Of a DNA stretch of 64,000 nt, positions 826 through 46,044 are shown piece by piece. A program made the translations under genes and the position numbers. Under the pieces are notes generated by a model. That model was not told where the DNA came from and did not search any database. It worked only from the letters and a program-made list of their open reading frames with translations. Source of the DNA: Amphiscolops sp. MND2022 (lineage: Eukaryota); contig OZ076414.1 in NCBI GenBank assembly GCA_964187785.1, positions 60,698,001 through 60,762,000 on the forward strand. Reading direction: 5' to 3'. The stretch's first letter is position 1. Each line of letters opens with the position of its first letter.

Positions 826-1096
826 TCAGTTGGCTTCCTTTCTGCTTTCTCCACCGCCTTCGTCGTGGTCTGCACTGAGAACCATTTGCAAGATGGCCTT
901 ATGTTGTTCACTCTCTTTGACGTCATCAACCGACTTCTCGCACTTGACGTAGAACAAGATGTAGGCCTGGGTGGCTCTGACGTCATCCTCGGTGCACCTC
1001 TCGGCCTTGGCGTCGTTGAAGTGCATCCAGAAGCGACTGCCCTCGTTCCAGCAGTAGGCCGTGTAGTGTCCAGAGGTGAAGCCACTCCCGTGGTGC
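826..1096 (-). CDS. USP44: USP44/49-like exon 9 (His box, C-terminus, TGA stop)
   Basis: Acceptor cttttcag|G, phase 2. Encodes [30 protein letters not shown]...AQAYILFY-like segment and ends KEAN*. Confidence 0.93.
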
Positions 1097-4000
1097 CTGA
1101 AAAGTCACACTTCAGAGTATATGATTCCGCTGTGATAGTATGATTTTAGCATGATCATACCATGGTGAGTATGTTTGGTCAACCTGGGGAAAAGACCAGT
1201 AACCTAGAGTCTTGTGATGAAAGAATGGAACACTTACTTGCAAAGAAAACCCTCACCTGGAATGATTTCAAGTTGCAATCATCCCAACAGGGGGTTTTGA
1301 AAGTAAAACTGAGGAAGATGAAAGTATCTAAAGCTACGTTTACCTGACGACTGCCCTGAGATTGTAGAGTGCCCCGCTGGTCTTCTTGATATGCTCGCTG
1401 ACGTAATCAGACAGGTCCAGTAAGAAAGGGTAGCTGACGTGGGCGTTGATCTTTTCCCTGCCAGTCCTGCCGAACCAGCGGAACCGCTTGAAGTGCACTG
1501 TCAGCACCAGAGGAAGGCGAGTGAATGCCAGTCGCTTCTCTGCGTCTGTAAGCACCTGTTTGCGTCTCAACCTACAAAATACAGCCGAACTCGAATAAAA
1601 GAAACACGGATAAAAGAAACATTTGGATATAAGAAACGTTTTCACTGCTCCGCTTTTATGCAAGACAGACCTTCTACGTTAATAGGACAACTGATAACAA
1701 GACGGGAACGTCTAAAGTCGACGCTATATCTAAGGCTCAAAAAGCGCAAAGTTTTTGAAACTGTAAAAGGGGGACCCTACGGGCTTTTTGAAAATCCAGT
1801 TTGTTGCAAAATATCAAAAAATTGAAGGAGGGACCCTTAGAGACATTTTAAAAAAATCGAAAAATTTTTTGAAAAAATTTTCGAAAAAACGAAAAATTTT
1901 GAAACATAGTGTCGAAAAACTAGGAAGGGGAGACCCTTTGAGCTTTTTGAAACTTCAGTTTGCTGCAAAATATCAAAAAACTTGAAGGGTGACCCTTTGG
2001 CGACAAAAACAATCGAAAAAAAGTCGCACAGTGCCGAAAAAATTCAAAGGGGAGACCATGTAGTCCCGTCCGGTTTTGTATCTTTCGTTAAAAATTGAGT
2101 ACACGAAAGGGGGCACCCTTTGCACTAACTTAGATGCGTTTCCGCTTGCCGGTCCAGTAGTTTAGTAGTTCTGTAAAAAATGTCCACTACGCATACATTC
2201 TGTTGTCTGACGAAAAAAAACTTGCCACTGTAGTAGTCGGGCTCATTTTGATAAAATGCGCGACTAAAAAAACTATCGATAGAAGAAACTCTTTTCTTAC
2301 CGCCCTATGAGTTTCTTTTATTCGAGCTTGACTGTAAAGTAGAATAGTTTATTTATTCCGAAAACTTTAAAAAAATCTGAGTTTAGATTCAACTAATCAT
2401 ACACTTGATATCTGATTACCTGATTAACGTGTGCGTTTCTTTCAACTTTGTCAATTTTTCTAATTCATACGTACACTACCTCTCATAATGGATTTTCAGT
2501 TTTCATTTTATGGTGGGAATTTAGTGTTTTTTAAAGAACAAACGTTATAGTAATTTCTCAAGACAAAACAGCTTTTCAGCTCGTCGAGCTTTTGCCCATG
2601 AGAACCAAGTTCCTGTGAACATGACAGTCTTTATTCATTTCCCTATCCGTTTTGTGGAATTAGAGAGAATAGTTCGAATAGTTCCTTTTCATTTATGTGT
2701 CTTACAACTTTATTGACTTGTTGCGCACTGAGGTAGTATATCAAAAATGGTGGATATGGTGATTGAATATTTCATACTTCTTAGCTGGTCTCACTTTATA
2801 CATTTTATACAACTACTATCACTTACTAGAGAAAAACGCATTTAATTAACAAAAGCACAGCTTTCGTCTCAGTTTTACAAATCAGGTTGATGATGCTCTG
2901 GTAACTTTAACGTGTAAACGCGTCGTCGCTGAGATCCGATTATTGAAGGTCAAAGAAATTGTTCAAAAATTGAGTTTCTCTTCAGTCCAAGAAATCAGTT
3001 TTGAGGGATGTCCGATTGAATTTTCAACAAAACCAAATTTTTTAAAATCCTGTTAAATGCCGCAACAAACCGCTAGATCTTTTCTAAGAAGTCTTTTTTA
3101 GTCCAACTGAAACAACGATCATTTAGAAAAACGATTAATCAAATAGTGTAATGAGTATCGAAACGTAATGAGTATTCAAAATAATAACGCGTTGTTATTG
3201 GCTATTCATCTAACTAGCAAGATCTGTTCGATTCAGCTCATGTATCGTAATGTCGTTGTTTCAGGTTCATAAACATATTCTTCTCGCTTTCTGACAAAAT
3301 TTCCCTCAAAATCTATGTAAAACTTCATAAATCCTTTGCAGATTTCGCCAGTGAGAGTGAAAAAAAAAACAAAATATTCCAAAAAATGGAATTCCAATGC
3401 CAAAACAAAAATGATCTCATTTCGGGCGTTCATACCAGTTCAAAAATATTAAATTTTCTCAACCCAGTAAACAAACAGAAATTCAAGTGTTTCACAAAAA
3501 TGAGAACTCAGGATGACTTTTATGATGACAATCCATAATTTGTCGTTGGTTCAACTGTATGGTGTAAATTTATATCATATCATGTACCACGTCTTGTATT
3601 TGCTGAAATATTGCCGCAATCTATTTACTCTGATCTCCATGGCCTATGTCTTTTCCACTTGATTCTCTTGAATCAATTTGACATTCAGAACAATGAACAT
3701 GTGGACAAAGTTAAGGGAGCAAGAACAAGACAGAAATGTAGAGGTAATTTTGTGGTTAAAGAATACAGACTAAAGAAAACAAATGAAAACTCATGGTACA
3801 GAGAGAGCAGTTTGTTTATGCAGTCCAATCAGCAAAAAGGTGAACTTTGGAGGACAAAGTCAAATCACTGAAGAGCAAGCTCACAACTTTACTGGGGCTT
3901 CTTGGATCAACACTACAACGAAAACAACTTTTGTGTTTGGTGAAATTCTATCTTTGTGTTGAAACTGCAACCCAGAAGCAAAACTGAAGGAACTCAAACT

Positions 4001-7000
4001 GAAGGGATTGATATCCATTGGGTTTGAACCCCTAAATACTGTACTTCTAAAACTACACATCTTTCGATGGAAGTGAAATAGATTCAGACAGTTCCTGATG
4101 AGACAGACACGTTCGATGATGAAAACGTCCCTCCTACAACGAGGAGTGCCAAGTTCGAGAAACAATGGAGGTCAGAGAGAGCGGATAACATATCCGCGAA
4201 CGTGGTCAAAATTGTATATTTGCAAAAAAGTCATTATATCTTTAATGGTATTGGCTAAACAGTTATCTTCAGAAAGAAACCATGCAACAAACCCTTGTTT
4301 GTCTTCTACGCATTGAGGGCAAAATCGAACAGTCGAGATGTGCGCATAACAACTGCGAAGCGCGACGGACAAAAAAATGTTAATTCAAACCAATTGTTAT
4401 TGAACCAAACCGAATGATGCCGAATGACGATTAAGAAAATTTTGTTATTGTTTATTTCTCCTCTTCATGTGATACAACCCTTCAAAAACAAAACTGTTGA
4501 AGTCACGTCAATCTAAATAAAATTTGCTTTCGTATTTTACGCAGTCATAATTACTTGGCACCACATCCAGACGAGTCACAAATCCAGCAAAGAGACGATG
4601 GAAGAGATCTTGACATTGAGTAAAGCACCATCTTTGTACGAACGAAAAATCAGGCATTCATGTACATGTATCTGGGATCAATAATCACCCAGTCGTTGCG
4701 ACGCTCATTGACGGCAACTACAAGCAATTTGAAGGTTACAAGTGAACCGAGCACGAACTGACAGAAAACCGTAGTTTCAAGCTCGTACTTATTCACTGAA
4801 AGTAAAACTAAACTATGATTTCGAGCGAAAATGTAAATCCAAGATGCTAACTAATCTTGTCCACAAATATCAATGTTATATATTAGTTTCATTTGAATAA
4901 CAGCATCTAATGCACTTTGTTCTTGAAATTTGATCCATGAACAATGGACACTCTTGGTGATAAATGGTAAAAGTAAGAAGTACCTCCAACGCGAAAGCGA
5001 TCTAAAACCCTTGCTGGTCCAATTATTTCCAGAGTACTACGATAGTCCTCGTGACATCGCCACACACGGACAATTCATGATGGACAATGTGCACTTTTGT
5101 GACTATGGCGCCTATTATGCCTCCCGCTTGTTAAACATAAGAATAAATTGTTATCTGATAGGCTTTTTTGTTTGTTCAACTGTTTGAGTTTATATCAAAA
5201 TGAAAACGAACTGATGGCGGCCGTGAGTTCTAGACCTGATGTTGATTCTACGTGCAATGACGCAGACAGCCCCATCAAAAATGGTCCGTTGGACCCACAG
5301 TATCGTCCGAAAAAGAGACCCGTCTTCAAGATTGCGTGGCACCACCCAAGACAATCACAAACCAGCAAATGTACGATGGAAAATGTCTTGACATCTCGAC
5401 ATTACCGAGCAAAGTACCATCGTCGTACGGGTAAAACATCGGTCATTTATGTACATATACCGTCAATTTTCACCCAGACGTTGCGACATTCATTGACGGC
5501 AACAAAAACCAGTATGAAGGTTATCAGTGAAGTGAGCTCGAACTAACGGAAAACCGTGTCTGTTTAAGCGTGTACTTATTCACTGAAGGCGAAACTACAA
5601 TTTCGAGCGAAAATGTTCCCAGATGGCAAATTACGTTCTGCACAAAAATCAATGTTTATCATCGCAATCTAATTCGAATAACACCGCATATCATGCAGCA
5701 CTGGCTGTGGTGGATGCAACTTGTAATAGAACACTTTTTTCATGAACTTTTATCCATGAACAATCAATCGACATTCTAGGTGCTAGATAAAAATAGTTTG
5801 AAGTCTCCTACGTAAAAACCATCTAAAAATTCCATTTTCAATCAGATCCCTCATCTTTCTAGTGCAACAATTTTTGCGGTAGATTCATTGCCATGTCAGT
5901 GATATGGATAAGTTCCTTGCAATTCGTATTCAACAACCGGCGAACGTCTAACTGAAAATTAAAGCATAGGCATTTTGGAGTCACAGAAAACAGCTCGAAA
6001 AAAGTGTAGAAACATCGGAGGCGTGCATCGGAAAAAGTGTTTAGTCTGAGCATTTTCAGACAATATGTGCCAGGCATTGTTTTATTTAATTAATTTTTTT
6101 TTCCAAAATAGGGCGCTCCAACCTGAGGAGGTGCATAGCGCACTTCTCCCAAAAATTCATTTCTCCGTGAATATATGGGTCTTGAGCGAATACTTCGCTT
6201 GTGAGCGTTGCGGTTCGATTGATTGTTTTTTCACTAGCGATACCCACTGGTGCTCAGTAAGTGGCTTGCGAGTGAGATGTCTAGCCAAACTAAGGTCAAT
6301 CTTTTCTGAGGGATGAATGATCTTGGGAAACACCCATTCAAACAATACTGAAGGCGCAGACACAGGAAGACGTAGTTGAGAGTTTGTTAGATCTCAACAC
6401 TTTTTTGGGACAGAGAAATTGTGATACGCAATAGCATATATTTGGGCTTCTTTATATATTGCCGCACACGGACATTTCCTGGTGGATCATGTGCTTCTTT
6501 AAGACTTCGGCGCCAATCATGTCGCGTGCTTGTTTAGCAAGACAGTAAATTCTGTTATCTGATAAGCTTTTTTGTTTGTTCAACTGTTTGAGTTTATCAT
6601 CAAAATAACGAACTGATGGCACCCATGTGTTCTGGACCTGATCTTTAATTCTACGTAGAAAGATGCAAACACACATCCTATCGAAGAGAGAGGGTCCTTT
6701 GGACCCCAGAGTACCACCTGAAGAAAAGACCCCTCGTCATTGAAGTTAGTTCTTTTCCTAGTTCTAGTTGGTAATGCAAACAACTGATAATTCAAGTACT
6801 TCTAAATCGAACTTCCGTTGCCCAGTAACAACGTTCAATGGAACATCAAAGTGTTTCCGAACTTTTGTGGCAGCGCATTTTGACTGTACTTACAAAAGAA
6901 ATCGGAAAAACCATGCTTGAGAAGGACCAAATTTCAATGTTGAGAAAAACCTTCAAGTTTCCTTCTGGTGTTGTCTTTTTAACCGAAGTTTGTTGGAATC

Positions 7001-10000
7001 AGTGACTTGATATATCTTTTCGGTTTCAGAAGAATTCTCGTGGAATCGTTTTTGACGTCCAAGCTTGTTTGCAACTGGTGCAGATTCTCCCTGAGCGTCC
7101 GACGGCTTCCGAATACATTATCTCTATGGAAAACGACTAGCTAAAACTGGAACTGATGTCTCGGTATTTCTATAAAAAATAGTTTTTAAAGAAATTTCTA
7201 TTCAAGTATCTTTTAGTTTCTGTCAGAACAGGATTCCGAGATAAGTCGGCGTTTTCATAGGGGAAACGAATTCTTGTTTAAAAATTCCATAGGTTGCAGG
7301 GGCTTTTTAAACGTTTTGATAGGAAATTTTTTTCCATGTAAAAAGTTCATGAAGGCCCATCAGGGCTTGCTTTTAACTAGACCAACTTTTTATGTTTGTA
7401 AAACAGGAATTTATATAGCTTCTACAAGGAATGAGAAACTTTGTGGTAGTTTCCACCGCACTTAACATCCTCAATTGTGAATGATGTTCTTCAACAGTAC
7501 TGATTGAGACTACATAGCATTGATACTTACTATAACAGGACCGTGCGGAATGAAACCACAAATGAGTTCTCTTGATTAGCTTGTATGTGCCCATAGTACA
7601 GAGGGGGCGTGTCGGTAAAAATGAGTCATTAAAAATAAAAAGAGTTCAGTGTCCGAACGCAGCAAGCTGCAGAGCCTCCTTACAGTGTCATTAACGGTCC
7701 CATGGTATTGTATGTACTGGCACACCTACCTTTGATTGGATTTGCAGAACTCACAACTGTAAACTCGACCCAGCGACTCAGTGTTTGTGAACTGTGACAA
7801 CATCTCATACAGGTCACAAGAGTCCATCTTGGAACACCTGTCGCTCTGGAACCTCTCCGGGAACTCCAGAGGCAGATCTGAGAAGGGTTCCAGCACTCTG
7901 TTCTCAGAATTGCACTTCAGACAGTTGACTTGGCTCTCTATTTCTCCGTAGAATATTCTCTCGTAAAGCCGCTTCCTGTTGGGAACATAGTCTTCCAGTT
8001 CGCGCTCGATTCTGTCGAGAAAGACCTGAAGGAATTCTTGGGCGTCTTGTTGGGCGTGGCCCCGTAAAAAGGGGATGGTCTTCCACACACTGCGCGATAC
8101 AGGAATATTTCAAAACCATCTTTATAAATTCATTATACCATTAGCTGTAGGACGCAAGCAATTATCTTTCATTTTGAATTTCTTTCTTGAATCTCTACAA
8201 ATGATTGAAAAGTTGAAAATTTTCTATTTTCTTCAGTTTTGAACTCAATCCAATGTATTTTCAGCAACAATGGCTCCCAATTCTACCAAACAAACGTCAA
8301 TGAGTTTGAGAACTTTCAAAACTTAATGAGAAGCTATGGAACCCGAAACGCAAATTTGGAATCGTTCATGAAGCCGAAGAGCAAATTTAGACGAAATCAA
8401 AGTGAATGTAGTTTTAAAAATAATTCAAAGGCATCTGATGTTTTCGAAACTGAAACTAGTTCCACTCTTCCTCACAGCAATGATCAAATCTATCGCATTG
8501 TAAAAAATTAATTTTCTAACTTTTCAGACTCAGTACCTCTTGTAAATGAATATTTCGCAATGGGAAATTAGATTTTTCCGGATCACTCAAATGTGAAGTG
8601 AACACTGTAACATTCCTGTGGAGCAGCCCAAAAGGAGCCACCAAGTGGTGTTTGCCGGCCCACATGACACGAAGCAGGGCGTGCAGCTCTTCGGCTAGCA
8701 TGACGTCATTGCTCTCGTTGTCGTCTATCTCCGAGTTGGCTTCGGATATCTCGGAGGCATCCACGGGAGTACACGAAGGAGTACTACTGCTACTACCGTT
8801 GTTGTTACTCGGCGTCGTTCCTTGTTTGGAGGAGGAGGAGGAAACATGGCTGTTGTTTGAGATACTTGAACCACCTTCAAACAACAGTGATGTACATTTG
8901 GAACATTTGTTTCACCATTGGTTTAAAAATGGTTTGTTAAACTTTTTTAACAATTAATCAATCTGTTAAACAGATTCGGTTTCGAAACCTAATTTTCTAG
9001 CCATTGAAAATAAAACTTTTGTCAATTTTATGTTCAAAACTCAAAGTCCCAAACACAAAATTCAGAGGTGGTTGAGGAGTTCAAGTAAGGCCAGGCTGTC
9101 ATGCCTAGTTTCCGCACCTTTTCTGAAATTCCAACCACTCATCCGATTGTTTTCAAAAACTTTGAGGAAATGGTCACAAAAGTAAACCCTAATGCGAAAA
9201 AAGTTGGTAAAAAATTAGATTCATGGTAAAAAATGGTTCAACAGATTCGGTTTTAAAATTTGTCAATCGGTTATTTTTAAAAAAAAATTAGTTGAAAAGA
9301 TTTACCACAACATCACTGTCAAACAAGTGTTGTGCATGAATCGAATGCCGGTTGTACTCATAGCTGAAGCTTCATTGAAAAAACTTTGTATGCGTTTTCA
9401 ATGGTGACCTACTGTGTTACTAGAGTGGGAAAGTAAGTTAGCAAACAGTTGCTCAGTTCTTAAAAAAGCACATTTTTTGGAATGTATTTTTTGCAAATGA
9501 TCATATTTTTTCAGTTATTTTTTTGCGGGTGGCTCCGAAAAAACTATATTGACACAAATAACAACTAACCTGTTAGTCCAATAGCTTGTCGATGAAAAAG
9601 ACAATTTTTCGTTTCCCATTTTTTGTGTTTCCTATTTTTTTATTGATTGCGAAAAAAATCGCTGTCCTCACTTGAGGACGAAATCACTGTCAACAATAAC
9701 CTAAATTAACATACCGATGTTTTCAAGCAGTCTACTTTTTTTCAACTTCTGTCGTTTTGTCAGTAGCTTATATTCTTCAGCACAGTTTTCATGTATTATG
9801 TTGGTACCGTGTTTGATTTTAACGGCACAAACATTAGAGTAGAAAGAGAATTTTTCCTTAATACAAGTTCCACCCAAGATTTTATGCGGTGAGAAAAATA
9901 CTAACCCTTGTGTCCATTTTTCTACTCATGAAATCGAGCGATGGTTCCGCTTTAAGATTACCACCACATGTACCGTTCTTGCATCTTAAAACCTATTCAC

Positions 10001-13000
10001 ATATTCGTATCAAAATTTGCGTGGAAAAGCGTTGAAACGGGCGCGCTTCAGTGAAAGACGACCCCTTCGGCTCAAAAGAGGTGTTTCCCCAACTGAAACC
10101 ATAAAAAACTTCAAGGAGGGAACATTTGGTGAAGAAGAAAGTTTCGAAAAAAATCACAGTGCCCAAAAAAGAACCAAGACATATGGTCTCGTGCAGCTTT
10201 GTAGAAATTTTGCCCCTCTGGGGCTCTAACAATTCTTGTTAAATATCTAAAACTATAAATTTTTAGTTTCACAGTTTTTCCTGATTATATCGCATTGAGA
10301 GAACTCTGGACAGATTTCTCAAATTAATAATAACAATTTACGAACATTGCAACAAAATTGCAAAAGAACATTGCAAAAAGTAAGAGCAGCTAACAGCACA
10401 AAACGGATGAGAAATTGTTATAAAAAATCAACTTTCCCGGGATTAAATTTGAAAATGTACAACACTGCGAACCTTCTAAACCATTGCATGTCTTCCTGCT
10501 GATTCTCTGGTAGCACTCCGAGGTCGACAAACGCTTCGTTCTGGGCTTCAAAGTTTCTGGCGAAGGTGGACTGCGAAATGAAACATTGTTTGATGGATAA
10601 TCAGTGGCTGAAGGTTGTTTTTCATCGCTGGCTGTTGTTGACACATCTGATGGAAAATTTATTTCACAACACAGTTTATCAAAAATATTTTCAGGTCGTT
10701 TGTCGAACTCTTCCAACTTCGGTCTCATCGGAGATCCCGGAGGCGAAGAGAAACCTGGCGTCATAGAGTGTTAGCAATTCATCTTTGAAAACAACTTACA
10801 ATTTTGTTGCGACTCAAACAGCGGCTATTCCGACAATTTGTCATTTGATCAAATCAATTAGCTTTTCAAATGTCGGCAGAAGCTTTAACTACTTGGAGAA
10901 CCTGGATTTGCTTCATGCAACAAGCCGGTTGCAGGCTTGACTATGTCTAGGGCTCAAAAATATGAGGACCGAAACAAAACAAAACGAAAAAAATTCATGA
11001 AAATTCAATTTCAACTCATTTCGATGGATTTTATTCGAGAAAAAAATCTGTCTGCCTTTCTAGCAAGAAATCTCTCATTGTAACCACTAAGCTATCCCTG
11101 GTTACAGTAATCTCGCAGATTGAAAAAAAAACTTTCGGTGAACCATTTTGGTAAAGTCCGTCGGATTGATAAAAACCAGCTTTATATAGCTCAGACTAAA
11201 AATAATAAGTCGGGAACGGCCCAAGTCGGCGTCATATCTAAGGCTCAAAAATATTCAAGGAACAACTATTGTGAAATTTTTCAATTATCACGCAGTGCCG
11301 AAAAATACCCAAAAAATTTCCCGAAACTCGAAAACAGCTTTCTTTCTGAACTGGAAACATCAGAAAAAAACGAACTTGCCTTTGAAAAAATATTTCAAAA
11401 AAAGTATTTGGTTAGAAAAGTAGCATATTGCCGAAAAACCCAAAGAGAGACCCTTTAGGCTCTTAAAACGTTTCTTACAAACCGAAAACTCCAATGAAAG
11501 TCAAGGGGTACCCTTTAGAAGAATTCAAAAATTTTCCGAAAAAAGTCGTTTGATCTCCCCTCTACTGTGGGAAGCACAAGAAAATTTTGTGGTTTAGTGC
11601 GAGACTCGAACCCACGCTCTCCTGCTTCTGAGACCCCAGAAAAATAGCCGGCCAAAAAGTTGAACAAATGAATAAAAAATGTGGACCGATCGCATCGAAC
11701 TAAAGAAAAAAACTAGCCACTGTAAGCGAAGCGTTTCAAGTTATAACAAAGTTCACCTAGAATAAATTAATCGCAACTAACTGATTTAGTTTTGTTTGTA
11801 TTTTGTACGCCTGAGGGCAACAAAATAATAAATTTTTTACTTCTTGCTAACACTGATATGTTCACCTGATATGTTGAGACGTAGAAAAAAGTCTGTGAAG
11901 GGTAAAAGGTGGCCCAAAACTTGAAGTATGGAGTTGAGATAGCACGTGTTGCCGAGGTTGCGGAGGCCGAGGACGCCAGGGGTTAAAGCTAATTTGGGTC
12001 GTTTTTTCTGAGGTCGAGTGGCTTGCGAGCTGGCAGCAGCACTAGAAGTAGAGCTAGCCATGGCACAGGGCGGGCGTGTACATAACACTTTATTGATGAT
12101 CAAAACCTCGAAAACAAACCCGGGAACGACCCGAACCTGCGCTTGGTTTCAATTTTAAAAATCCTTTTCGAAAATCGTTTGGGGCTCAGTTTTGAGAAAA
12201 CTCTAACGGAGGAATGAAGTAAAAAAAGAATATTTTGAAACAAAAAATGTTTGAAAAAATTTCAGTACCAAATAATATTCAAAGAGAGCCATTTCGCCAC
12301 AGCTATTTTTGAAGGGCTATTTTACTCAGATAATTGGGGAAAATAGCACATCTATCGCTGAGATCTCTTAAATGACTGACAACCAGTGATGATGTTGAAT
12401 TTTTATAACCATCGGTTAATAATTTAACCAATGAGAAGTTTTAAACAGAATTTTTTTTTCAACTTTATGATTATTTAACTCATTATTCAACAAATTAATA
12501 ATCTGAACTATAATTTTATTATAATATTAATTATCTGAAAGTGAAAGTCGTTGCTTTGATGCCTCAATTTACAATGTGAATTTAGTACATCTAACATCAC
12601 TAATAAATCTGTTAAAAACACCCCGAATTTAACCAATTTGGTCTAACAGATCTGTTAATTGTTAAATGCATTTAACAAATCATTTATTTAACAGATCTGT
12701 TAAACCAATGGTCAAATAATTTGTTAAATTGGTCATCATTGCTGATAACGTTTCCTCACCAAATATAGAAAATTCACAATTCGACGACGGAAGTGTTTGT
12801 GCGAGCATGAAGCACGCATGTTTAGAAGTTTGATCATGCCCACCCTGTGAGAGAAGAAGTTCGAGATGTGACGTCATCGCTTTCAGACGCACGTTTGCGC
12901 TTCTTTTTAAGTAGTTCTGCGAGTTTGCTGGACTTGGGGGACACGGGACTGGGCAGAGGTCGACCAGGGTTAGATTTGATCCACGATCGCTTGTGTTTTT

Positions 13001-26445: not shown

Positions 26446-26762
26446 TTATACCCTCTCGACTATACCAGCAGCTACAGTAGCACCATTGGATCGCAACATG
26501 AATCGACCCAAAGTCTTGGATACTTTGAACAAGTGCACGCAGATATTGCGCTGCAGGGCCAACACCACTATGGCAGACGAATTCTTGGGCACAAACTTTG
26601 GGTTCTTCTTTGTGATTGTTCCACTTTTGTCTAATAAACTCACTATTTTCTTGATGTACACTGGCTCCTCGATACAGATGTAGTGCATTTCGGCCGCAGA
26701 GCCTCGCATTAGGATTTCCTCCGTGTTGAACGTCACGATTCGGGCGTGAAAACAACTGGTGA
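26446..26762 (-). CDS. HBS1L: HBS1L exon 12 (domain III, stop)
   Basis: Acceptor catttttag|TC, phase 1. Encodes FHARIVTFN...KKNPKFV...[21 protein letters not shown]. Confidence 0.94.
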
Positions 26763-35700: not shown

Positions 35701-38700
35701 CATTCTTCATTTTCCTCTGTTTCTTCATCGCTGTCAATGGTCAAAACAGTATCTCCAGCTGGAGTTTGAAGTTGGGGCATCTTTTCGTCTTTTCCAAACA
35801 TTTTCCTGCAAAGCCAATATTGCGGTTTCTTTTTTGCTTTGGGTTTTTCTCACCCGTTTCAAATTTTTTTGAAATGGATTGACGCTCTTTTTTAATTCTA
35901 GAAACGGTTGACTCATTGATCCCATATTTTTTGGCCACATCGGCCTGCTTCGCGCCCCCGTTCAGCTCTTTAACAATATCATATTTCTTACACAATGAAA
36001 GTTCCGTGCGTGGACGTTTGGTAGACATATTAACCAATCTGAAGATATCAACAGATTCAATTATTGAATAAAATAACAAGACTCCTTTGCATGTGCATGT
36101 AAACGCATTGTGCCTATTTCTCAGAAATGTCACAGAATTTCACCTTCCATCTCGCTATTAAGCGAATATTTCTGAGAAAAGTGACTCCCGGGACATGAAA
36201 AATCCTTGCTAATAAAAAATCTTGCTATTAAGAAAATTGCTAATAGGCAAACAATCTCACACCGTATACCGCTCGGGAGGATTTTTTACTTGCTAATATA
36301 TGAATCTTGCTATTAGAGCAATTGCTAATAAGCGAACTCCACTGTATTACGGTATTTCAGTCCAAAACTAGGTGTGAATTGAGTATTATCAGGTATTATT
36401 GGATCTTGTTTACGCCGTGTTCGGTCTTTGTTCAAATTACTTGTCTCGGTTGACACCTCTGATAGTAATTGTAACATCATGAAGCATATGCTCCCGAAGT
36501 TGCATCTCCTGAAGAACTGGCCGCATACTTGGGGGGGGGGGGGTTGCGGTCCAAGGAAACTTGATCAGCACCGTGATCACGTGATGTATTCCACGGTGTA
36601 TGAATCAAGAAAATATTTCAAAATTTATTTTTTTCGTGATGTGATCGGACACAATGGCCAGACAAATCAATCCGAGTTTTGTATGACCGAATTTGAATCA
36701 ACCGAGGAGGAAATTCCCGGAAAAGGAAAAGTATGATTTGTGAAATGATCTTTCACAAGAAAGTACTTCCAGGTTCAATTTTGCGAGCCTAATGCTAAAT
36801 TTGAAGTAATTCAATCTGATCGTTGAAAACTAGACTTTCAAGGAGCGAAATAATTGATGACGCGTTATTTTCCGTTACAAGCGTTATAGAAACGTTCCGT
36901 TACAGTAGTTTCAACAATCTATTAGATACAATTCGCATTCTTGCTCAGATGTTGAAAGGCCCAAACATCCTTCGTGATGTCAAGAAAATTCAATAATAGG
37001 GTTTAATTGTATCATTGTATCCAAATCTTTTGAGAGATCATAAGACGAGCTTTGGAATCAACTTTTGTGAAATTTGTTAGAAACAAGTTCAACACAATGT
37101 ATAACCAATAATAATTTGCGGGTGAGTCACTATTTCGAATATAATACTGCTCATTTTTTGTGGAATAGAGTGTTCGGAAGAGATTTTACAATGAGCTCTC
37201 CAGGTTTAATGAGAAATGACCTTTCTCATACCAAGTTGATTATCGCTTTTCCAGGTTTATCCTTCAAGTTAATTGTAACATTAACTTCTGGTGCGTCAGA
37301 AATATAAAATAGATAAAAATACATAAAATCACATGCCTGTGATTTCGGAGTTGGTGTGGAAATTGCAGTTTGGGAAGATGTCTGTAAACAATTGGAGGAG
37401 TTGGCTGAAACTGCGAGGCCGCCGGGGACTTTGTGCTGAGATTCTGCACTTTCTCCGTTCTGGACAGAAAGGCGGGAAAACTGACTTTCGTAGAGCACCG
37501 GACCAGACCCTGAAAAAGACAAGACACATCAAGTGCCAATATTCTGGTTTAACAAAAACTCGATTAACAATCGCCAAGATGAATCAATCCCGTTGCACCG
37601 AAATTTAAATAGAACTGGGGATCTTTTCTGTTAATTCACCGATTTAATCCCCCCAGTTAGGCGGTTAACAGAAATTATCATTGAATTAAAACAGCCCATC
37701 ATCAAATTGCAGCATTTTATAACTCTAGCTGCAGCCGAAACTCATTGCTCATATTGGGGAATTGAAAACTTCACGCTTAGCGTTGATAAAAAATACAACT
37801 TGATAATTTAATATTAAACTTAAGAACAGGTTTCACTGTTTGACTCCAACATTGAGGCAAAAAGTTGAATGCATTCAATCAAATAAAGGTTGATAAAACG
37901 ATAACTATTTTATCCAGGGTTGATTCTTAATCGAAAGAAACTATCGATCAAGGCATCGTTACTGAGTTTGCGAAAGCTCTCGACTTAGGTTTTTCTTAAG
38001 TTTCTGAAAAATAGGAATTATGAAAAATGTTCTTTCTTTAAATCGTTAACATGACTCATTTTCCATTTGATTGTTTTGAGGCTTCCATTAAATGGGCTTC
38101 TGCATCTGAAAGTCTCTTCTGCTGAATTTGTTTATTGTAGGTTTTTCGTTGTTTTGTTTGCAACATTCAACAGATAAATTTAATTACACCAATTTTGATT
38201 TAAATGAAGAGCATTCCAATTTAGTTGAATTCCGAAGCGGCGTTTACAGCCAATTAAAAACGACTTGAAACAAAAGCAATTCAATTCCAAAAAAGGTGAA
38301 GCATATTGTATTTCAAATAACAAACTTTCGGAAGCCAATCAAAAGTTCACCCAACTCAATCTCAAAATGAATAGAGAATCGCTTTCAATGAATATTGCAG
38401 AATGAGAACAAACGTAACTGCTGTCGATCACAAAAGAATTGTTCGTCACGGATGAAGTTTTCTTTCTCACTGCTTACTAAACGAGTATATGAAGCGACAC
38501 TATGGTTATTATACGACTCAATTTTATTGGTCAATTCACTTGATGCGTAAACATGCTTCATTTAAAGTAAAATTGGTGTATTACTTACTATTTGGTTTGC
38601 GCCTTTCAGCTTATCCTGAAAGTATGGGAACCGTGCGAAGCGAAACTATGTTGATCTGCAACGGTAATGATGGCCCAGTGTTCAGAGGGACAATTTTGAC

Positions 38701-41700
38701 TGAATGATGAGATAGTGCCGGTTCGCTGCAAGCTGCAGCCTCTTTGCAGTGTCAGTAACGGTCCCCGTAATATAAATATTGAAAACATCAAAAAGTGGAG
38801 GACATATTTACAAAACAAAACTTTCTACGTAGTTCTGTCTGTCTCAGAGGCTGCAGAGCGACATGCCGCCAACAAGCAATCGTAGAGTCATCTATCAGTG
38901 CTAAAGTTCACGAGGGAGGGCTGTCATAAATCTGACAATCCCTCGGATGCTTCCCATGAAACGATATAATTTCCGACGATCAATAAAATTTGAGATGCAT
39001 TGTCCTAATTTATAAATTACCCTCCACTTACCGATGTTTTCCAAATTTATTTTATAGGACCGTTATTGACACTGTAGAGGAGGCTCTACATCTTGCAGCG
39101 TACAGACACCCAAACTCTTTTCACTGACACACCCTCCATGTACTAGGGGCAAAAAATCCCACCTCTCTCTACAACATTTCCCGGTTTCAGTACGCGCGGT
39201 CCTTTTTATTATAGTTTAGGAGAGGAAAGAAAGGAAACAAAACAACAAAACAAAACTTACCATTCGGTAGGTTAACGGGGGACGCCTGACGCTTGATAGC
39301 ACCGTTAGAGGAGGAGGAGAAGGAGGTTGTGTCTTTGAGGTCGAGTGCCCTCTTAGTACCAGTAGCACCCCCTGTGGTCTCAGAAGTTGAGGTGGCGGCG
39401 AAGAAGTTGAGGTGAGACTTGTCTGGTTTGCGGGGACTGGCAAGCAGGGCGTCGATGGTGCAGTCCACACTGAAGTTGTTCTTCACCAGCAGCTGGGCGA
39501 CCTCGCCGTCTGGAAATGAGTCACCGACCACTTGTTGCACTTGCATCAGGCACGATTTCAACTTGGCTGCAACAAAAAACCACCCGGCTTGTTGGTTTTG
39601 AAATCATTAACGATTTACTTGTTTCTCGCATCTATAAGAGGTTCTTCATTTGCCCCAAATCATTTCACTAAACTTCAAAATCAGACTACTGAGTGCGCCA
39701 AAAAGAATTATTAAATAGGAGTCCACTGGCGGTTACACAAAAAATCAAAACCGATCCCGCATTGGGTTTCCGAAACAAACTCCAAAGGCGTTTTTCTCAT
39801 TTTGATCAGCATCAGCTGCCATTTATCATCGTCCTCGAGATAAAACCTTCCTTTAGGATCAAACTTTTGAGAGCGAGACAGCATTCCATTATACCACCAA
39901 GTATTTGCACCAATTTTGGGAGTATTATGAAACGTAATAAAAGCATGTTTTGAAAACTTTTCACAGTGTGCGTGCAACGTACGAACAAGCCAGGACCGGG
40001 CTAAGTCGGCGCCATATCTAAGGCTCAAAAATAGCAAAAGGACTTCAAAGTGTCAAAGTATTCTTTAAAATAGCAAAAGCACTTCAAAGTGTCAAAGCAT
40101 TCTCTTCTACAGTACCTGAAAAACCCAAAAATTGGCGCACCCTTTCGCATTTTTCAACATCAATTGTTCCAAAAAATTAAAAAAATTGAAGGGGACACTG
40201 TGGTGATTTTTTTCGGAAAAAAAGTCTCACAATGCCAAGAAAACTGAAAAGGTGGGACCCTTTAGTCTCTCCCGGTATTGTATGTTACGCGGAAAAAGAG
40301 GAAAAACCTTTTTGGTTCAGTTCGCTAGGCCAAATGATTCAATTTGGGACCATAAAATTTCGTATAACTTCCAAGAACTACTTTGGTCATGTTCGTATGG
40401 ATTGAAAAAATTTTTAAAAAGAGTCACTATAATAGTCGCGTTTCACTTCATGAAGCGCCGACTAAAAAGCATTGAAGCGTAACTTCGAAATTTGTATAAA
40501 GATTGCAATCAATGCAATGTTGCCTATGACGATTACAATTCAAATCGACCAAACAAATTTCGAATCGAGGTACCTCGGTCTTGTGGGGACAAAGACGAGG
40601 CGTCGAAACTCTTTGAGAGACTGTCACTCTCTTCGTCACTACTACTGCTGACAGGTTCTTCGGGGATCTTGGGTTCTTTCTTCGTTTCCACTCTGAACAA
40701 ACCAAATCATTCATAACATTTCCTTCATCCGGGAAAAATTTTCACGGAAGTTCCCATTAAAATGGATCGCAAAAGCTTGATTGACCAAAAAACTTTATAG
40801 CAGCAGATAGTCACAAGCCAGCGACCATGTCTTCAACAAGATCGGTTGCAATGAAAAACTATGACACCCAAAATGGTTGAATGAGTCAAAGTTTGCACTT
40901 TTTGAGGAGAGGAGTCCTCTCAGAGGACAGGTATAATATAACCACGAGTGATTTTTTGACGTACAGTAGAATGCCCTTATAACGGACCTGCTTCGGACCT
41001 AAAAATGTGTAGCTATAAAGACAATCCAATAAAAACACGGTATATGGATTTTTGGGGACAATGGCACAAAAAAATTCCGCTAGAAAAACTTTCGAGAAAA
41101 TATCCGTTATACAGCCATCAGGGATGCCAAAATAAACATTTGGTATTTTACCGGACCGTGGAATAAATTACTGTATTTTTTGCTGACATAAAATAAATAT
41201 TATTTCATGTAACAAAATATAAATTCAATACTTTCTCAAGTTAAAAAAATTATTTCAGAAAAATTTATTTTTCTGTGAGAATAGAATTAACAGAATTAAT
41301 GCGGCAGACACGGGGAATTCCCGCACAACAGAAGTCTCATACATCAGAAAATGAAAATTCGGTCCCATACGGCAGAATATTTGTTTATGCTGCAGTCTGA
41401 TTGGCTGGACTTTGAAATAGAATTGTTGAAAACGAGTGTCGGATTTTGCCGGAATTATTATTATACCGTAGTCAGCTATGTTCACATAGCCCTAAATGCA
41501 GGAGCAAAGCGAATCGGAGCGACGTGCCATATCGCCATACCTCAATGTTGCTATTTTGCGAAGCGACCGAGCCATACAACAAATATGCTAACCTCTTCAA
41601 AGAAAAGTTCCATACATATTGGCTGTAACCAGAGTTTTGACACCGCTAATCAGCGATTTAGCGAACTAGCGGCCGCGCAGGAATTTTCCAGCGATTTCAT

Positions 41701-44700
41701 TAGCGATTCAAATTAGCGGCAACTAACAGATTGTCCAAATTCAAAATTTCTTGTCGGTATAGACGGTGTTTCAAAATTAATTTCGGAAAAATTCCAACTC
41801 TTACCCTTGTAAAACTCGCACAGTACAAACAATTCTAGTCTTTTTTCTTCCAAAAACCGGATAAATTATTTTGAAACATACTTGAACTAAACATTTAATA
41901 GTTTACAGAAAAGCTTTTCAGCGAAATAGCGATTTTCAAATTAGCGGTTAAGCGATTTGAAAATCGCTATTTCGCTGAAAAGAGTAAGAGTTGGAAAAAA
42001 TAGCGATGTCAAAACCCTGGCTGTAACAGCACTAAAACCTAGTACACAACTCCGCTTATAACGATTTCCCGGGGACCGGCGTTTTTTATTCGTTATACCC
42101 GAATATCGTTTTAGGCGAAAATCGTTATATACTAGCATTGTGGCCGGAACAGTGAAACTATAGCTATAACTGGAATATCGTTATAAACGTAATCGTTATA
42201 AACGGAGTTGAGTGTAATTTGAATTCTGCTGTATGGGGCCGAATTTTTATTTTCTGCTGTATGAACAGGCCCCGGCAGAAACATCTAGCCAAAGCTGCTA
42301 CATGTATGTGTAAAAAAAACCTGCATTATTGGCCGCCAATTGCCAAGCTATATTTTACATGTAAACAATTTACATTTTATTCCTTTCTCTGTGAAATCAG
42401 AAATTTTATTAATAAAATACCTTTTTAGTTTTCATGACTAAAAATCACTAATTGATCTTTTTAATATCATTAAATAATTTTATGTAAAAATATGAAATAA
42501 TCTTGTTTGAATAATTTTTTTGGAATTCCTGATAGCCATCCGTTGTAAAGCCTTCTACTGTACTTGAAAAGTATCATATAGGCAGATAGTAGCAAAATTA
42601 ATTAAGATGCCGCCACTTACTTGATGTAGTTGGAGAAGGAGTGTGCGAGGTTGGTGGCCCCCTGGCCGGGGTACATGAACTGGGAGACAGAGGGGGAGGC
42701 GGGCCAGTCGTACTGCTCGTCCACCGAGGTGCTCATCGCCCCGTACTCACACACCTCGAAGTCATCAGTGAGCGACTCCCTACACGGTAAAACCCCCAGA
42801 TTAATTGATAATCAACCCCCAGAACTACAGGGTCTTTCAGAATTACGCGTCAAAACTATCGGTGAGACTCCCTTCGGATGCAAAACCCGCGAATCAATTA
42901 ATTAACCCCCAAAACTACAGGGTCTTTCAGAAATTATGGGTCAAAACTATCTTGAAATTGTAAGAATTGGTCAAATTTAACAAGAATGTGTTTTTTTTAG
43001 GTTTTACAAAGAAACAATTGGTTAAGTGGAAATTTCAATTTTCCCACTTCCTCTTTCCGTTTATGAATCAAGTTATCCAATACAGGGCTTTTCAATAAAT
43101 TATTTGTATTGCAATATATTGCAATATTTGTATTGCAATATATTTATTGGGGATGGCAAAAGGGAGCAATAATATTGCAATATATTGCAATAAATTGGAT
43201 TTGAAAACAAATGGAGCATTTCTCAGAAATATAAAATAACCACAATATAGCATACTTTCTGCGCTTTTGCTATTTCTCAGAAATATAAAACAACATATCC
43301 CCTGCGAGAAAATAGCCAAACCACACAAAGCAAGCAGGTCTAAGTATTGAAAATGCCTCCTAAAATTGATAACAGCGTGATTATGAAATTCTACAAACTT
43401 GTTGAAGGCATGCCTGCAGGCGGTTTGAAAAAATGACAACCAAAATATTTTAGGATCTTCTTAAAATTTTCATCAAATTAATTCGAGTATCAGATTTCAA
43501 CCCGCCTGATCAAAGGGTCAAAAAACCAGTATGAATGCATTTGTGGAAACAAACGTCAAAGAAATAAAAACTCTGGATGGAGCAATTTACTATCGCATAT
43601 TTCATCTCAGCATAAGGCTGATATGACAGATTTCTTACAAATTTAGCCCTTGATCAGACTACTTAACAGAATTTTTTGATTGTAACGCAGTTACAGCTAA
43701 ATCTAAAAACATTTATGGCAGGATTGATAAAATTACTTCTCAGTTGTTACCGTTTCCGGTCGTTACAGAAGAAGTCATCAGAAAAGGATCGAGATTTTTG
43801 GGACATTAGCAGCTTATAGACTGGTATTAATACTGACTCAAACATATCTGTTTATGACGTTTTTTTGTTGATATTTAATGAAAAATATTTTTCCTTGCTT
43901 TTTTCTCCCGAGTCTTCAAATTCTTCATATTGCAATATATTGCAATATATTTATTTCTGACAATGTTTATTGCAATATATTTATTGGAACTATTTTGATC
44001 CAAAATAATATTGCAATAATATTTTGAAAAGCCCTGATCCAATATACGGAAGCGATTACAGCTGTGTGAACATCATAATGGAGGTCATTTCCAGCACCTA
44101 ATGTAGATGAATAAACTTTTGATGTATGAAAAACAAAAGTTCCATATACTGCTGAAAATCTGTTGAAAAATGGTTACGTTCTGAACAGTAGTTGAGATAT
44201 TTGAAAATAAAGTTGACAATTTCTGGAAGAGACTGTAGAACATGTTTAAACACTGCATCAATTAATTCTATTCCATGTTCTCATTTCAGAGGGAATAAAA
44301 AAATTATTACCATTGATCATTGTCATCCTTTACTTAATCCGTTTGCTACAGGCAATCGTATTGCTTTGAACCCACTACTTGCTGACGTAATATGTCCTCG
44401 CACAGTATATTTCATTTATTCCAATTCAACTATTTTCCACGAAGCTGCTCGAGAAAACTCGTAGATTTCGTTTGTATCCAACTTTAGCTGCACTAACTTA
44501 GCTTTTGTGGGCAACCAAATAGATAGCGAAATTGACACACATTTTCTACTAGACACTTTCCAAAAGTTAACTTTTGGAAAGTGTCTAGTAGAAAATGTGT
44601 GTCAATTTCGCTATCTATTTGGTTGCCCACAAAAGCTAAGTTAGTGCAGCTAAAGTGCAAATTTGCACCTAATTAATAATCGACTAGTTAATTTTCGGCT

Positions 44701-46044
44701 ACTTTTCTGCCCTTTAATTTCGATGAGTTGCCTTCAGTGAGGTGTTTTCGACAAATTTCCCGCATACCTTTCATTAGGTTGACTGATTCAGGCAAGAATA
44801 AGAATTCTTATTCTTGCCTGAATCAGTCAACCTAATGAAAGGTATGCGGGAAATTTGTCGAAAACACCTCACTGAAGGCAACTCATCGAAATTAAAGGGC
44901 AGAAAAGTAGCCGAAAATTAACTAGTCGATTATTAATTAGGTGCAAATTCGTCAAAAATTACCGATTACCAACTGACTGTTATTAACCCACAAAAATGTT
45001 TCTCGTAAATATTATTGCCAAGTGATAATTATAAATTAATTTTCCGTATTTGATGGGTGAAATTTTTATTCTTGCTCATAATAAAGCTTAAACACTTGCT
45101 TATCGCAAGTGTAATTAGTTGTATAGGCGCATGAAACATTGTATTATTTGCTTAATGGTATAATTTACAGTGTAATATTTTGATGGTAATACAATAGGAT
45201 CACAAGATTAGCACTATATTTGCGTAAAGCGACAATTCGTCCCAAGCGACAATTCGTCCCAAATTCCAAAAAGCGACAATTCGTCCCAAGCGACAATTCG
45301 TCACATTTTGAAAAGGCGACAATTCGTCCCAATTATTAAAAGCTGCAATTTGTCCCCAATTTAATTGCCAATAAAGACCTTTGTAATAATGAATCCGGGA
45401 AGATTACAATTAGAGGCAGGTGCCAACAATTAATTTCAACATTCCACGACTAGTACGTTAAAATGCAACATTTTCTAATTATTGTCACGTGGTTGAATGA
45501 ATTCATTTGTAGTTGGTTTGATTATTTCTTTCATTTCAACCTTCAAAAGGTTGGTAATTAGCTGATCAATTAAACAATTTGGGACGAATTGTCGCTTTTT
45601 ACAAGTGGGACGAACTGTCGCCTTTTCAAAATGGGACGAATTGACGCTTGGGACGAATTGTCGCTTTTTGGAATTTGAGACGAATTGTCGCTTGGGACGA
45701 ATCGCCGCTTGGGACGAATTGTCGCCCAAACCTATATTTGGAGTCGATTTTCTGTGCTTGCGAGTTTTTCGCCGCAAAATTTTTGGCAAGTTCCTTTTCG
45801 GCCAACGGGTTTTTTTTGTAGATTTCTGATGAAAAGAGCCGTGAATGTGCTAGCGAAAAGTTTGAAAAAAAAACAATTTGTTTTTCTATAATCAGATGGA
45901 CTCCAGGGGACACCTATAAAAGATAAAAGCATATTATGCTTCTTGTGAAATGTTTTACAAGTTTCTATGAAATTTCAAAAGATGATGTAAAGCATAAATC
46001 TCTGAAACTCACTGTCTGTTTCTGATGTACTGGTGTCGAGCCAT
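26446..46044 (-). CDS. HBS1L: HBS1-like translational GTPase gene, 12 coding exons, ~725 aa
   Basis: Exons 46013-46044, 42621-42779, 40574-40692, 39261-39566, 37337-37509, 34802-34961, 32334-32472, 30626-30768, 29293-29531, 28673-28909, 27269-27422 and 26446-26762 join in phase (2178 nt). Shows an MARH N-terminus, an HBS1_N-like helical domain, G1 [23 protein letters not shown] and EF-Tu-type domains II/III ending [17 protein letters not shown]. Confidence 0.94.
27269..27422 (-). CDS. HBS1L: HBS1L exon 11 (ends at a GC donor)
   Basis: Acceptor caccgtag|GTT. Encodes [29 protein letters not shown]. Donor TCAG|gcatga, phase 1. Confidence 0.85.
27497..28040. mobile_element. Non-autonomous element (aaaaataggcccctccgggg family), copy 1
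   Basis: Colinear with 29586-30055. Subterminal inverted tatttctgct/agcagaaata. Confidence 0.7.
28312..28658. mobile_element. Degenerate hAT MITE of the cagagttttgac family
   Basis: gttttgacattgctaat...ccgcta repeats...agcgatgtgaaaac. Confidence 0.5.
28673..28909 (-). CDS. HBS1L: HBS1L exon 10
   Basis: Acceptor aattccag|GAA and donor AAG|gtacat. Encodes [34 protein letters not shown]. Confidence 0.94.
29293..29531 (-). CDS. HBS1L: HBS1L exon 9 (G4/G5)
   Basis: Acceptor ctgacag|GT and donor AAG|gtaagt. Encodes [26 protein letters not shown]...[12 protein letters not shown]. Confidence 0.94.
29586..30055. mobile_element. aaaaataggcccctccgggg family, copy 2, with internal foldback
   Basis: Colinear with 27497-28040 except for an 83-bp palindrome at 29676-29758. 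Confidence 0.7.
30626..30768 (-). CDS. HBS1L: HBS1L exon 8 (G3)
   Basis: Acceptor gtttaag|G and donor G|gttcgg. Encodes [41 protein letters not shown]. Confidence 0.92.
30817..31402 (+). mobile_element. DINE/Helentron-like element (copy e)
   Basis: Head aaacaagtcgggaacggcataagtcggcgccatatctaag; tail actataatagtcgcgtttcacttcatgaagcgccgactaaaa. Confidence 0.65.
32334..32472 (-). CDS. HBS1L: HBS1L exon 7 (switch I/G2)
   Basis: Acceptor atgtttag|GT and donor AG|gtaggt. Encodes [35 protein letters not shown]. Absent from the ORF track. Confidence 0.94.
32963..33619. mobile_element. hAT MITE with nested element and tRNA-SINE head
   Basis: Termini cagagttttgac/gtcaaaaccctg with TSD ctaacaac/ttaacaac (7 of 8 match). 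Confidence 0.8.
33251..33320 (+). mobile_element. tRNA-derived SINE head
   Basis: A box TGGCACAGTGG and B box GGTTCGAATC. No cloverleaf acceptor stem. Confidence 0.6.
34802..34961 (-). CDS. HBS1L: HBS1L exon 6 (P-loop)
   Basis: Acceptor tacttttag|GTA and donor G|gtcagt. Encodes [24 protein letters not shown]. Confidence 0.94.
35274..35421. mobile_element. Small pogo-type MITE
   Basis: TA|cagttgaatccgcccaattc ... gaattaaccggagttgactg|CA, an imperfect TIR. Confidence 0.55.
35430..36344 (-). mobile_element. pogo/Tigger deletion derivative, second 915-bp copy (HBS1L intron 5)
   Basis: Reverse complement of 23675-24589. Same length, TA TSDs, and identical translated ORFs in the ORF track. Confidence 0.9.
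37337..37509 (-). CDS. HBS1L: HBS1L exon 5 (low-complexity linker); 3' end at 37337 (GC donor) or 37232 (GT donor)
   Basis: Acceptor tctttttcag|GG, phase 1. Both candidate donors are phase 0, as exon 6 requires. Confidence 0.7.
39261..39566 (-). CDS. HBS1L: HBS1L exon 4 (HBS1 N-terminal helical domain)
   Basis: Acceptor tttgttgcag|CC and donor G|gtaagt. Encodes [41 protein letters not shown]. Confidence 0.9.
39984..40468 (+). mobile_element. DINE/Helentron-like element (copy f)
   Basis: Head aacaagccaggaccgggctaagtcggcgccatatctaaggctc; tail identical in design to copy e. Confidence 0.65.
40574..40692 (-). CDS. HBS1L: HBS1L exon 3
   Basis: Acceptor tttgttcag|A and donor G|gtacct. Phases 2 and 1 fit the neighbouring exons. 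Ends SLSPQDR. Confidence 0.82.
41630..42019. mobile_element. hAT MITE, 390 bp
   Basis: cagagttttgac/gtcaaaaccctg with a perfect 8-bp TSD gctgtaac. Confidence 0.88.
42045..42214. mobile_element. pogo-type MITE, 170 bp
   Basis: TA|cacaactccgcttataacgat ... atcgttataaacggagttgagtg|TA. Confidence 0.75.
42621..42779 (-). CDS. HBS1L: HBS1L exon 2
   Basis: Acceptor ccgtgtag|G and donor AA|gtaagt. Encodes [32 protein letters not shown], resembling the HBS1L 'GxSVEDD..SP...QF.Y' N-terminus. Confidence 0.88.
43083..44036 (+). mobile_element. hAT deletion derivative with BED-type zinc-finger remnant
   Basis: 13-bp TIR cagggcttttcaa/ttgaaaagccctg with a perfect 8-bp TSD atccaata. Internal [28 protein letters not shown]. 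Confidence 0.88.
44481..44656. repeat. Perfect spacerless palindrome, 2 x 88 bp
   Basis: Checked base by base; centre ...caaaagtt|aacttttg... between 44568 and 44569. Confidence 0.97.
44660..44949. repeat. Perfect spacerless palindrome, 2 x 145 bp
   Basis: Checked base by base; centre ...aataagaa|ttcttatt... between 44804 and 44805. Confidence 0.97.
45225..45730. mobile_element. Foldback/MULE-like MITE whose long TIRs are built from 17-bp AAGCGACAATTCGTCCC modules
   Basis: About 6 forward units at 45227-45357 and about 7 inverted units at 45580-45727, around a ~220-bp core. Confidence 0.75.
46013..46044 (-). CDS. HBS1L: HBS1L exon 1 (start codon)
   Basis: ATG GCT CGA CAC CAG TAC ATC AGA AAC AGA CA|gtgagt gives [10 protein letters not shown]. 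It matches the family MARH start and is phase 2, as exon 2 requires. Confidence 0.85.

Follow-up and report, generated by a model that had tools for sequence, protein, structure and literature searches.

Whether an intron of a conserved animal gene may begin with a dinucleotide other than GT, and what would make such a beginning acceptable, is the question raised by two genes of the acoel Amphiscolops sp. MND2022. The genes, one USP44-like and one HBS1L-like, lie on the minus strand of a 64,000-nucleotide stretch of its genome (GCA_964187785.1, contig OZ076414.1, positions 60,698,001 to 60,762,000), referred to here as the window. A first-pass annotation had reconstructed 19 introns in the two genes and had given one of them a GA donor, a second a GC donor and a third, plausibly, another GC donor. 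Our gene models agree with it on all three counts. It is probable that these are real U2-type 5' splice sites, GA once and GC twice, and that they belong to a genome-wide class consisting mostly of lineage-specific introns with inverted-repeat ends.

Exact gene models were built from maps of open reading frames (ORFs) and from a reading of the junctions, and the two frames are open only with 16 GT, one GA and two GC donors (Table 1). At a rate of 1.5%, the chance of three or more non-GT donors among 19 is P 0.003. USP44 of Lingula, Ptychodera and others were the closest named proteins to the USP44-like product in a protein search, and UCH and zf-UBP are the Pfam domains recorded for its relatives; the exon-6 ORF as query gave no match. 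The last exon of the HBS1L-like gene matched domain III of human HBS1L (E 1e-23), and a search of the PDB with exon 11 alone gave no match. The full exonic CAG and the ATG at +3 to +5 that had been claimed for all three sites read exactly so: CAG/GAATGT in USP44 intron 6, CAG/GCATGA in HBS1L intron 11 and CAG/GCATGT in HBS1L intron 5, the slash marking the splice site. None of the 16 GT donors of the two genes has ATG at these positions. A motif search located CAGGAATGT (8610-8618), CAGGCATGA (27263-27271) and CAGGCATGT (37331-37339) once each in the window, all on the minus strand.

Table 1. Positions in the window of the two genes, their non-GT introns and associated repeats (aa, amino acids; nt, nucleotides).
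Feature	Position	Strand	Description
USP44-like gene	826..21393	minus	9 coding exons, 8 introns, 750 aa; stop-free translation
USP44-like exons 1-5	21393-21181, 16903-16721, 13112-12844, 12053-11866, 10754-10473	minus	gene model
USP44-like exons 6-9	8874-8616, 8089-7730, 1571-1344, 1096-826	minus	gene model
USP44 introns 3, 4, 5	12843-12054, 11865-10755, 10472-8875	minus	GT donors, strong inverted-repeat ends
USP44 intron 6	8090..8615	minus	526 nt, GA-AG; donor CAG/GAATGT, acceptor tatcgcgcag/T; single copy in genome
USP44 intron 6, 5' arm ACAGGAAT	8612..8619	minus	covers exon end and GA donor; +2 A is 8614
USP44 intron 6, 3' arm ATTCCTGT	8099..8106	minus	ends 9 nt ahead of the 3' splice site
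HBS1L-like gene	26446..46044	minus	12 exons, 11 introns, 725 aa; open frame
HBS1L-like exons 1-6	46044-46013, 42779-42621, 40692-40574, 39566-39261, 37509-37337, 34961-34802	minus	gene model
HBS1L-like exons 7-12	32472-32334, 30768-30626, 29531-29293, 28909-28673, 27422-27269, 26762-26446	minus	gene model
HBS1L intron 5	34962..37336	minus	2375 nt, modelled GC-AG; donor CAG/GCATGT, acceptor cttttag/GT
HBS1L intron 11	26763..27268	minus	506 nt, GC-AG; donor CAG/GCATGA, acceptor tttttag/TC
Old interspersed repeat	26809..27227	minus	inside HBS1L intron 11, intron positions ~42-460; terminal arms outside

The GA junction joins CTC CAC AG/GAATGT to cgcgcag/T GTG TGG and gives LLH-S-VWK, a product identical to that of three intronless relatives and matching Lingula, Ptychodera and Patiria. 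The sole GT alternative at this intron, AAT/GTTACA with gtgtggaag/ACC, would lose the conserved SVWK. The gene is functional, and USP44 intron 6 must therefore be removed precisely. Donors were scored on a matrix made from 44 local GT donors, whose own scores have a mean of 8.6 and a minimum of 3.1. With +2 masked the three non-GT sites score between 8.8 (CAG/GCATGA) and 10.4 (CAG/GCATGT), whereas every alternative GT donor scores 0.5 or less: -2.0 at USP44 intron 6, and -4.5 and -5.6 for the in-frame alternatives at HBS1L intron 11, with which the protein would be 8 aa shorter or 13 aa longer. The two HBS1L donors have the attributes expected of GC-AG introns of the U2 type, namely GC at +1/+2, an AG 3' end and a strong remaining context. 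On the level of DNA and predicted protein, the GA and GC donors are confirmed. Two other candidates were rejected. The donors GAATGTTA, GCATGAAC and GCATGTGA do not fit /RTATCCTT, the pattern of U12-type introns, and adenosine-to-inosine editing of the GA donor would produce GG, not GT.

The alternative that has to be taken most seriously, unlikely as we consider it, is that at least one junction is mis-modelled and a nearby GT is used, above all at HBS1L intron 5, leaving fewer true non-GT donors in the window. Here a GT four bases downstream of the modelled donor (CAGGCAT/GTGATT) pairs in frame with a second acceptor (cgttag/AC); the change falls inside an unconserved linker, where a difference of seven residues is not judgeable, and end pairing of the kind described below is not evident in this intron. 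Against this, the alternative donor (0.5) and acceptor (3.2) both score below the modelled pair, whose acceptor has 5.6, and CAG/GCATGT shares its motif with four other independently placed non-GT donors. At USP44 intron 6 and HBS1L intron 11, moreover, all GT alternatives harm conserved protein and score -2.0 or lower. The GC donor is favoured at HBS1L intron 5 on this reading of the DNA, and the site is the least certain of the three.

An independent sample of the same genome was provided by 19 actin and 14 tubulin introns, which were placed residue by residue against intronless paralogues. Beta-tubulin L081-L086, L075 intron 1 and L078 intron 2 were left out of this sample, the reference being too distant or indels being needed, and the second intron of actin gene D lies outside the 10-kb sequence taken. 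Seventeen of the actin introns begin with GT, one with GG (AAG/GGATTT) and one with GC (CAG/GCAAGG), both exceptions being in the gene L066. Among the tubulin introns there are 11 GT donors, two GC donors (CAG/GCATGG and TAG/GCCAGT) and one GG donor (CAG/GGATGT); CAG/GCATGG and CAG/GGATGT occur together in L080, and TAG/GCCAGT in L079. Pooled with the window, 8 of 52 introns (about 15%) have non-GT donors: five GC, one GA and two GG. The probability of eight is 1e-6 at a rate of 1.5%, and that of three GA or GG donors among 52 is 3e-6 at a rate of 0.05%, the usual frequency being 0.01-0.1%.

These donors share a strict context. Exonic AG at -2/-1 is present in all eight, compared with 28 of 44 GT donors, and both +3 A and +5 G are found in seven. 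At +4 the preferred base is T (six of eight, against 4 of the 44 GT donors), and five read CAG/GNATG; ATG at +3 to +5 occurs in five of the eight and in a single GT donor (p 1e-4). It had been suggested that this lineage tolerates any base at +2 when exonic CAG and +5 G compensate. The tolerance itself is supported, in that A, C and G all occur at +2 among the 52 introns. Compensation is an incomplete explanation, because T at +4 is not preferred by U1 pairing.

Comparison with relatives bears on the history of one of these introns. Three relatives (L048, L037 and L049) carry the equivalent of USP44 exons 3-9 as one uninterrupted ORF, which contains the same LLH-S-VWK as the GA-AG product, and at the DNA level the 526 nt of intron 6 appear in this comparison as a clean insertion between CACAG and TGTG. 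The first two introns of the gene are at identical places in the nearest relative, with GT donors. In Lingula, whose gene junctions were read by eye, USP44 is continuous at the position of intron 6; a Lingula intron lying 10 nt from the position of intron 7 was not counted as shared. It is possible that intron 6 is absent from the relatives through loss there, by conversion with a reverse transcript. For HBS1L, a search of relatives with the last exon gave nothing beyond the same species and a single distant fragment, and in the nearest relative no HBS1L was found over the 20 kb upstream of USP44.

The non-GT introns are further distinguished by their ends. When the donor region was compared with the reverse complement of the last 45 nt of the intron, a perfect complement of at least 7 nt was found in six of eight non-GT introns, compared with 5 of 44 GT introns (p 5e-4). 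The CAG/GNATG motif turns up repeatedly as one arm of an inverted repeat, and its partner, resembling CATNCCTG, lies 7-15 nt ahead of the 3' splice site. In USP44 intron 6 the two arms ACAGGAAT and ATTCCTGT form a perfect complement of 8 bp, or 12 of 14 when extended, and the closing stem, which holds both splice sites, is present in the minimum free energy (MFE) and centroid folds. In HBS1L intron 11 the arms CATGAACAA (27267-27259) and TTGTTCATG (26786-26778) are perfectly complementary over 9 bp, and in intron 3 of actin L066 the ends are complementary at 18 of 20 positions. Three of the five GT introns with such ends are USP44 introns 3-5, all of which are absent from the three relatives. 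The energy of the end duplex is -28.7 kcal/mol (z -4.2) in intron 3, -23.2 kcal/mol (z -4.4) in intron 4 and -19.1 kcal/mol (z -3.0) in intron 5, and direct repeats border introns 4 and 5. As whole molecules, USP44 intron 6 and HBS1L intron 11 fold no more stably than shuffled sequences (z 0.07 and -0.21), and the closing stem of USP44 intron 6 is the one consistent element of these folds. That the shared motif recurs as an inverted-repeat arm points to a common structure or origin of these introns, and CAG/GNATG looks like the arm of insertion-derived introns and not merely like a compensating consensus.

Other features of the intron ends were noted in passing. A second arm family, (CA)GTGTTAGCAA...TTGCTAAC, is found in USP44 intron 4 and in intron 2 of alpha-tubulin L080, and its members take as their donor the GT that the arm contains. 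USP44 introns 5 and 6 both have CAGTGTT close to their 5' ends. The last ~20 nt of USP44 exon 5, ACATGCAATGGTTTAGAAG (10473-10492), recur in diverged form over the final 20 nt of intron 5, ACATCACTGTTGTTTGAAG (8875-8894), which looks like a long border duplication supplying both AG/GT sites. For the old interspersed repeat inside HBS1L intron 11 the genome has 662 or more candidate copies, of which the 40 scored are 69-77% identical.

If the three sites are real members of a wider class, about 15% of the sampled introns would start with GC, GA or GG, with only the G at +1 fixed and with exonic AG, +3 A and +5 G forming the strict context. Most members would be lineage-specific introns with inverted-repeat ends, having a 5' arm of the form (C)AG/GNATG... 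and, 7-15 nt ahead of the 3' AG, its partner. On this view the motif that they share is most plausibly the terminus of DNA, probably from a transposon, that was inserted and has turned into an intron. A spliceosome with canonical U1 and U6 might tolerate any base at +2 if the rest of the site is strong, and pairing between the two ends of the intron may assist by drawing the splice sites together. More tentatively, a possible extension of this reading is that these are a distinct class of young, insertion-made introns, in which the arm carries the 5' splice site and its pairing lets canonical small nuclear RNAs (snRNAs) accept any +2 base.

Several points weigh against this interpretation. Splicing at the three sites is something we infer from DNA and from comparison of predicted proteins, and HBS1L intron 5 has the in-frame GT alternative described above. 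The 52 introns are a small and non-random sample, drawn from three gene groups and including paralogous intron positions. The comparison behind the probable lineage specificity covers, of the two genes, the USP44 introns. The end helix of HBS1L intron 11 is not in the predicted MFE fold, and clear end complementarity was not found in HBS1L intron 5. Target-site duplications at the three non-GT introns, compared by eye, reach 3-6 matches in 8 and none is convincing. No near-identical multi-copy family was found for these three introns, and USP44 intron 6 is present in a single copy in the genome, so that its origin from a transposon is not proven.

A very unlikely possibility is that these introns are removed in a structure-dependent manner, with no normal recognition of the 5' splice site, like the non-conventional introns of euglenids, in which paired ends define the cut. 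End pairing is strongly tied to the non-GT donors, and in USP44 intron 6 a single closing stem holds both splice sites, as such a mechanism would have it. However, all eight introns retain the G at +1 and the 3' AG and otherwise have good U2-type donor and acceptor contexts, two of the eight are without pairing, and the same gene contains helix-closed introns with GT donors.

Still less probable is that a variant U1 or U6 snRNA with altered pairing bases recognises the G-N donors, which the first-pass annotation had raised as a possibility. The U1 family is large and varied: ATACTTACCTG is the start of most of the 23 U1 matches that we examined, and the variants of the 5' end include ATACTAACCTG (three copies), ATACTTACCTT (six), ATACTTACTTG (one) and ATTCTTACCTG (one). 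A U1 isoform has also been proposed as the cause of such donors in the copepod Eurytemora (PMC7072748). Nevertheless, position 7 of U1, which pairs with +2, is unchanged in all 23 matches, and ten of the U6 copies at the 12 loci read have an identical, canonical ACAGAGA region. A single variant would, in addition, be unable to pair with A, C and G alike, and the U1 of Eurytemora is canonical too (PMC5714493). The supposition is not upheld by these sequences.

The U1 copies offered some observations of their own. Three full-length copies (L014, L020 and L021) begin with ATACTAACCTG and have A in place of U at position 6, which pairs with +3, and T at +3 (GTT...) is found in 10 of the 44 sampled GT donors, which is unusually many; the two may be linked. 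Three other copies (L008, L015 and L022), from three different body subfamilies, have a common foreign 5' end, ...ggtttaattgaaATATTTAAAC, joined at the CCTG of U1, and may be chimeric retro-copies. This foreign end differs from the 32-nt spliced leader published for Symsagittifera roscoffensis (PMC9911081), which is itself found in 1752 copies in the 1.07-Gb genome, with 0 for the control. By this count the genome would be that of S. roscoffensis or of a very close relative.

It can also be asked whether the GA is genuine DNA in a living gene. Reads were examined over 6000-11900, so that the GA site alone of the three is read-checked. A search for sequencing runs with this stretch returned four runs of one sample, all of DNA type. 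In their contigs, which cover 8183-9062 and in which alternative letters do appear elsewhere, no letter other than A is found at 8614. ENA ERZ25074608, a second assembly of this species that is 92-99% identical to the window and differs from it in transposon insertions, was followed along its contig. It has the same GA donor, with a 3-nt indel in the exon, a 2-nt indel in the intron and single-nucleotide polymorphisms nearby, and the GC donors of HBS1L introns 11 and 5 are both identical in it, that of intron 5 in a haplotype that is 4% divergent and has two synonymous changes directly upstream. Indels that separate the two assemblies are 3, 6 or 9 nt long in exons, and those in the intron flanks are mostly not multiples of three. 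Assembly error at the GA donor is ruled out by the contigs of the four runs together with the second assembly. USP44 compared with its nearest relative gives a ratio of non-synonymous to synonymous differences per site (pN/pS) of 0.07, with synonymous sites near saturation. On the branch leading to the window, 57 changes are synonymous and 7 non-synonymous, of which 33 and 4, respectively, are in exons 7-9; judged by these counts, purifying selection acts strongly on the exons that follow the GA intron. That the GA is a defect, whether through misassembly, through a private T>A change in what was a GTATGT donor or because the gene copy is dying, is hardly credible: the perfect donor CAG/GTATGT is one substitution away, but the A is carried by the contigs of all four runs and by a divergent second haplotype, the site has no other copy in the genome, and the branch on which it lies, exons 7-9 included, is selectively constrained.

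Our search of the literature found no report of non-GT donors in acoels, and the genome paper of S. roscoffensis is silent on them. The closest known system is the copepod Eurytemora affinis, in which GA and GG donors are frequent (Robertson 2017, PMC5714493; Frey and Pucker 2020, PMC7072748) and the non-GT introns are recent gains in the presence of canonical U1 (PMC5714493, PMC7072748). Amphiscolops resembles it in having frequent G-N donors in constitutive introns of conserved genes, exonic AG with mostly A at +3 and G at +5 as in the published copepod pattern, introns that are absent from relatives, and a canonical U1 5' end. It differs in that GC is the commonest non-GT form, GA and GG making up about 6% of a small sample, in that +4 is mostly T (GNATG), and in that the donors are known here from DNA. 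Inverted-repeat ends, present in most of the non-GT introns here, are not reported for Eurytemora.

Non-canonical introns are also known in the larvacean tunicates Oikopleura and Fritillaria (Soo et al. 2026, PMC13326754), where the GT rule is likewise relaxed with conserved snRNA sequences and where weak sites arising from intron-forming transposons are discussed. In Fritillaria, however, about 95% of introns escape GT/AG, the 3' end included, and the U2AF subunits are duplicated (PMC13326754), whereas in Amphiscolops the 3' AG and the G at +1 are kept and most introns are GT-AG. Ordinary GC-AG introns make up less than 1% of animal introns (PMC7072748). HBS1L introns 5 and 11 are like them in combining a GC donor with a strong consensus and a normal AG acceptor, but such donors number 5 of 52 here and three of the five read GCATG in place of the usual GCAAG.

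Introners, which are introns derived from transposons (Gozashti et al. 2022, PMC9860276; Huff et al. 2016, as cited in PMC13326754), offer another parallel in their absence from relatives and their terminal inverted repeats, and in USP44 introns 4 and 5 short direct repeats at the borders supply AG/GT. The three non-GT introns differ from Introners in that no near-identical multi-copy family was found for them, and USP44 intron 6 is unique in the genome. Use of a GA 5' splice site by the major spliceosome has a precedent in the human FGFR genes (Brackenridge et al. 2003, as cited in PMC5714493). There it is an alternative site dependent on a nearby element, whereas here the GA site is the only route to the protein.

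If the more tentative reading given above is right, acoels would be the third animal lineage to have relaxed its 5' splice-site rules independently, and the first whose relaxed donors go with a defined intron structure. Together with the copepod and the larvacean tunicates they would provide a third natural system for the check that the spliceosome makes of +2, with a testable link between relaxed donors, intron-end pairing and the origin of introns from inserted DNA. The intronless orthologues in the three related ENA assemblies, ERZ26859043, ERZ25071359 and ERZ25071366, are exact before-and-after pairs for the study of intron gain. Should the donors be confirmed by RNA, gene prediction in this acoel, and perhaps in other acoels, must permit G-N donors; otherwise a sizeable share of genes would be truncated or split, as in Eurytemora.

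The locus has also received other insertions. A 1.3-kb insertion with an ORF of the helix-turn-helix type (35073-36365) lies in HBS1L intron 5 in the window only and is absent from the second assembly. That assembly has in turn a hAT-like ORF insertion in the same intron (L052, ~9853-11385) and an insertion of ~17 kb with integrase and reverse transcriptase ORFs in USP44 intron 1 (L051 5823 to L053 14753). In all four runs the contig depth is very high, up to ~10^6, at 11122-11712, 9349-9742 and 7576-7772, stretches which mark highly repeated elements within USP44 introns 4, 5 and 7. Just upstream of the HBS1L-like gene, at 47802-49508 on the minus strand, an intronless open frame of 569 codons encodes a RING-finger-like protein.

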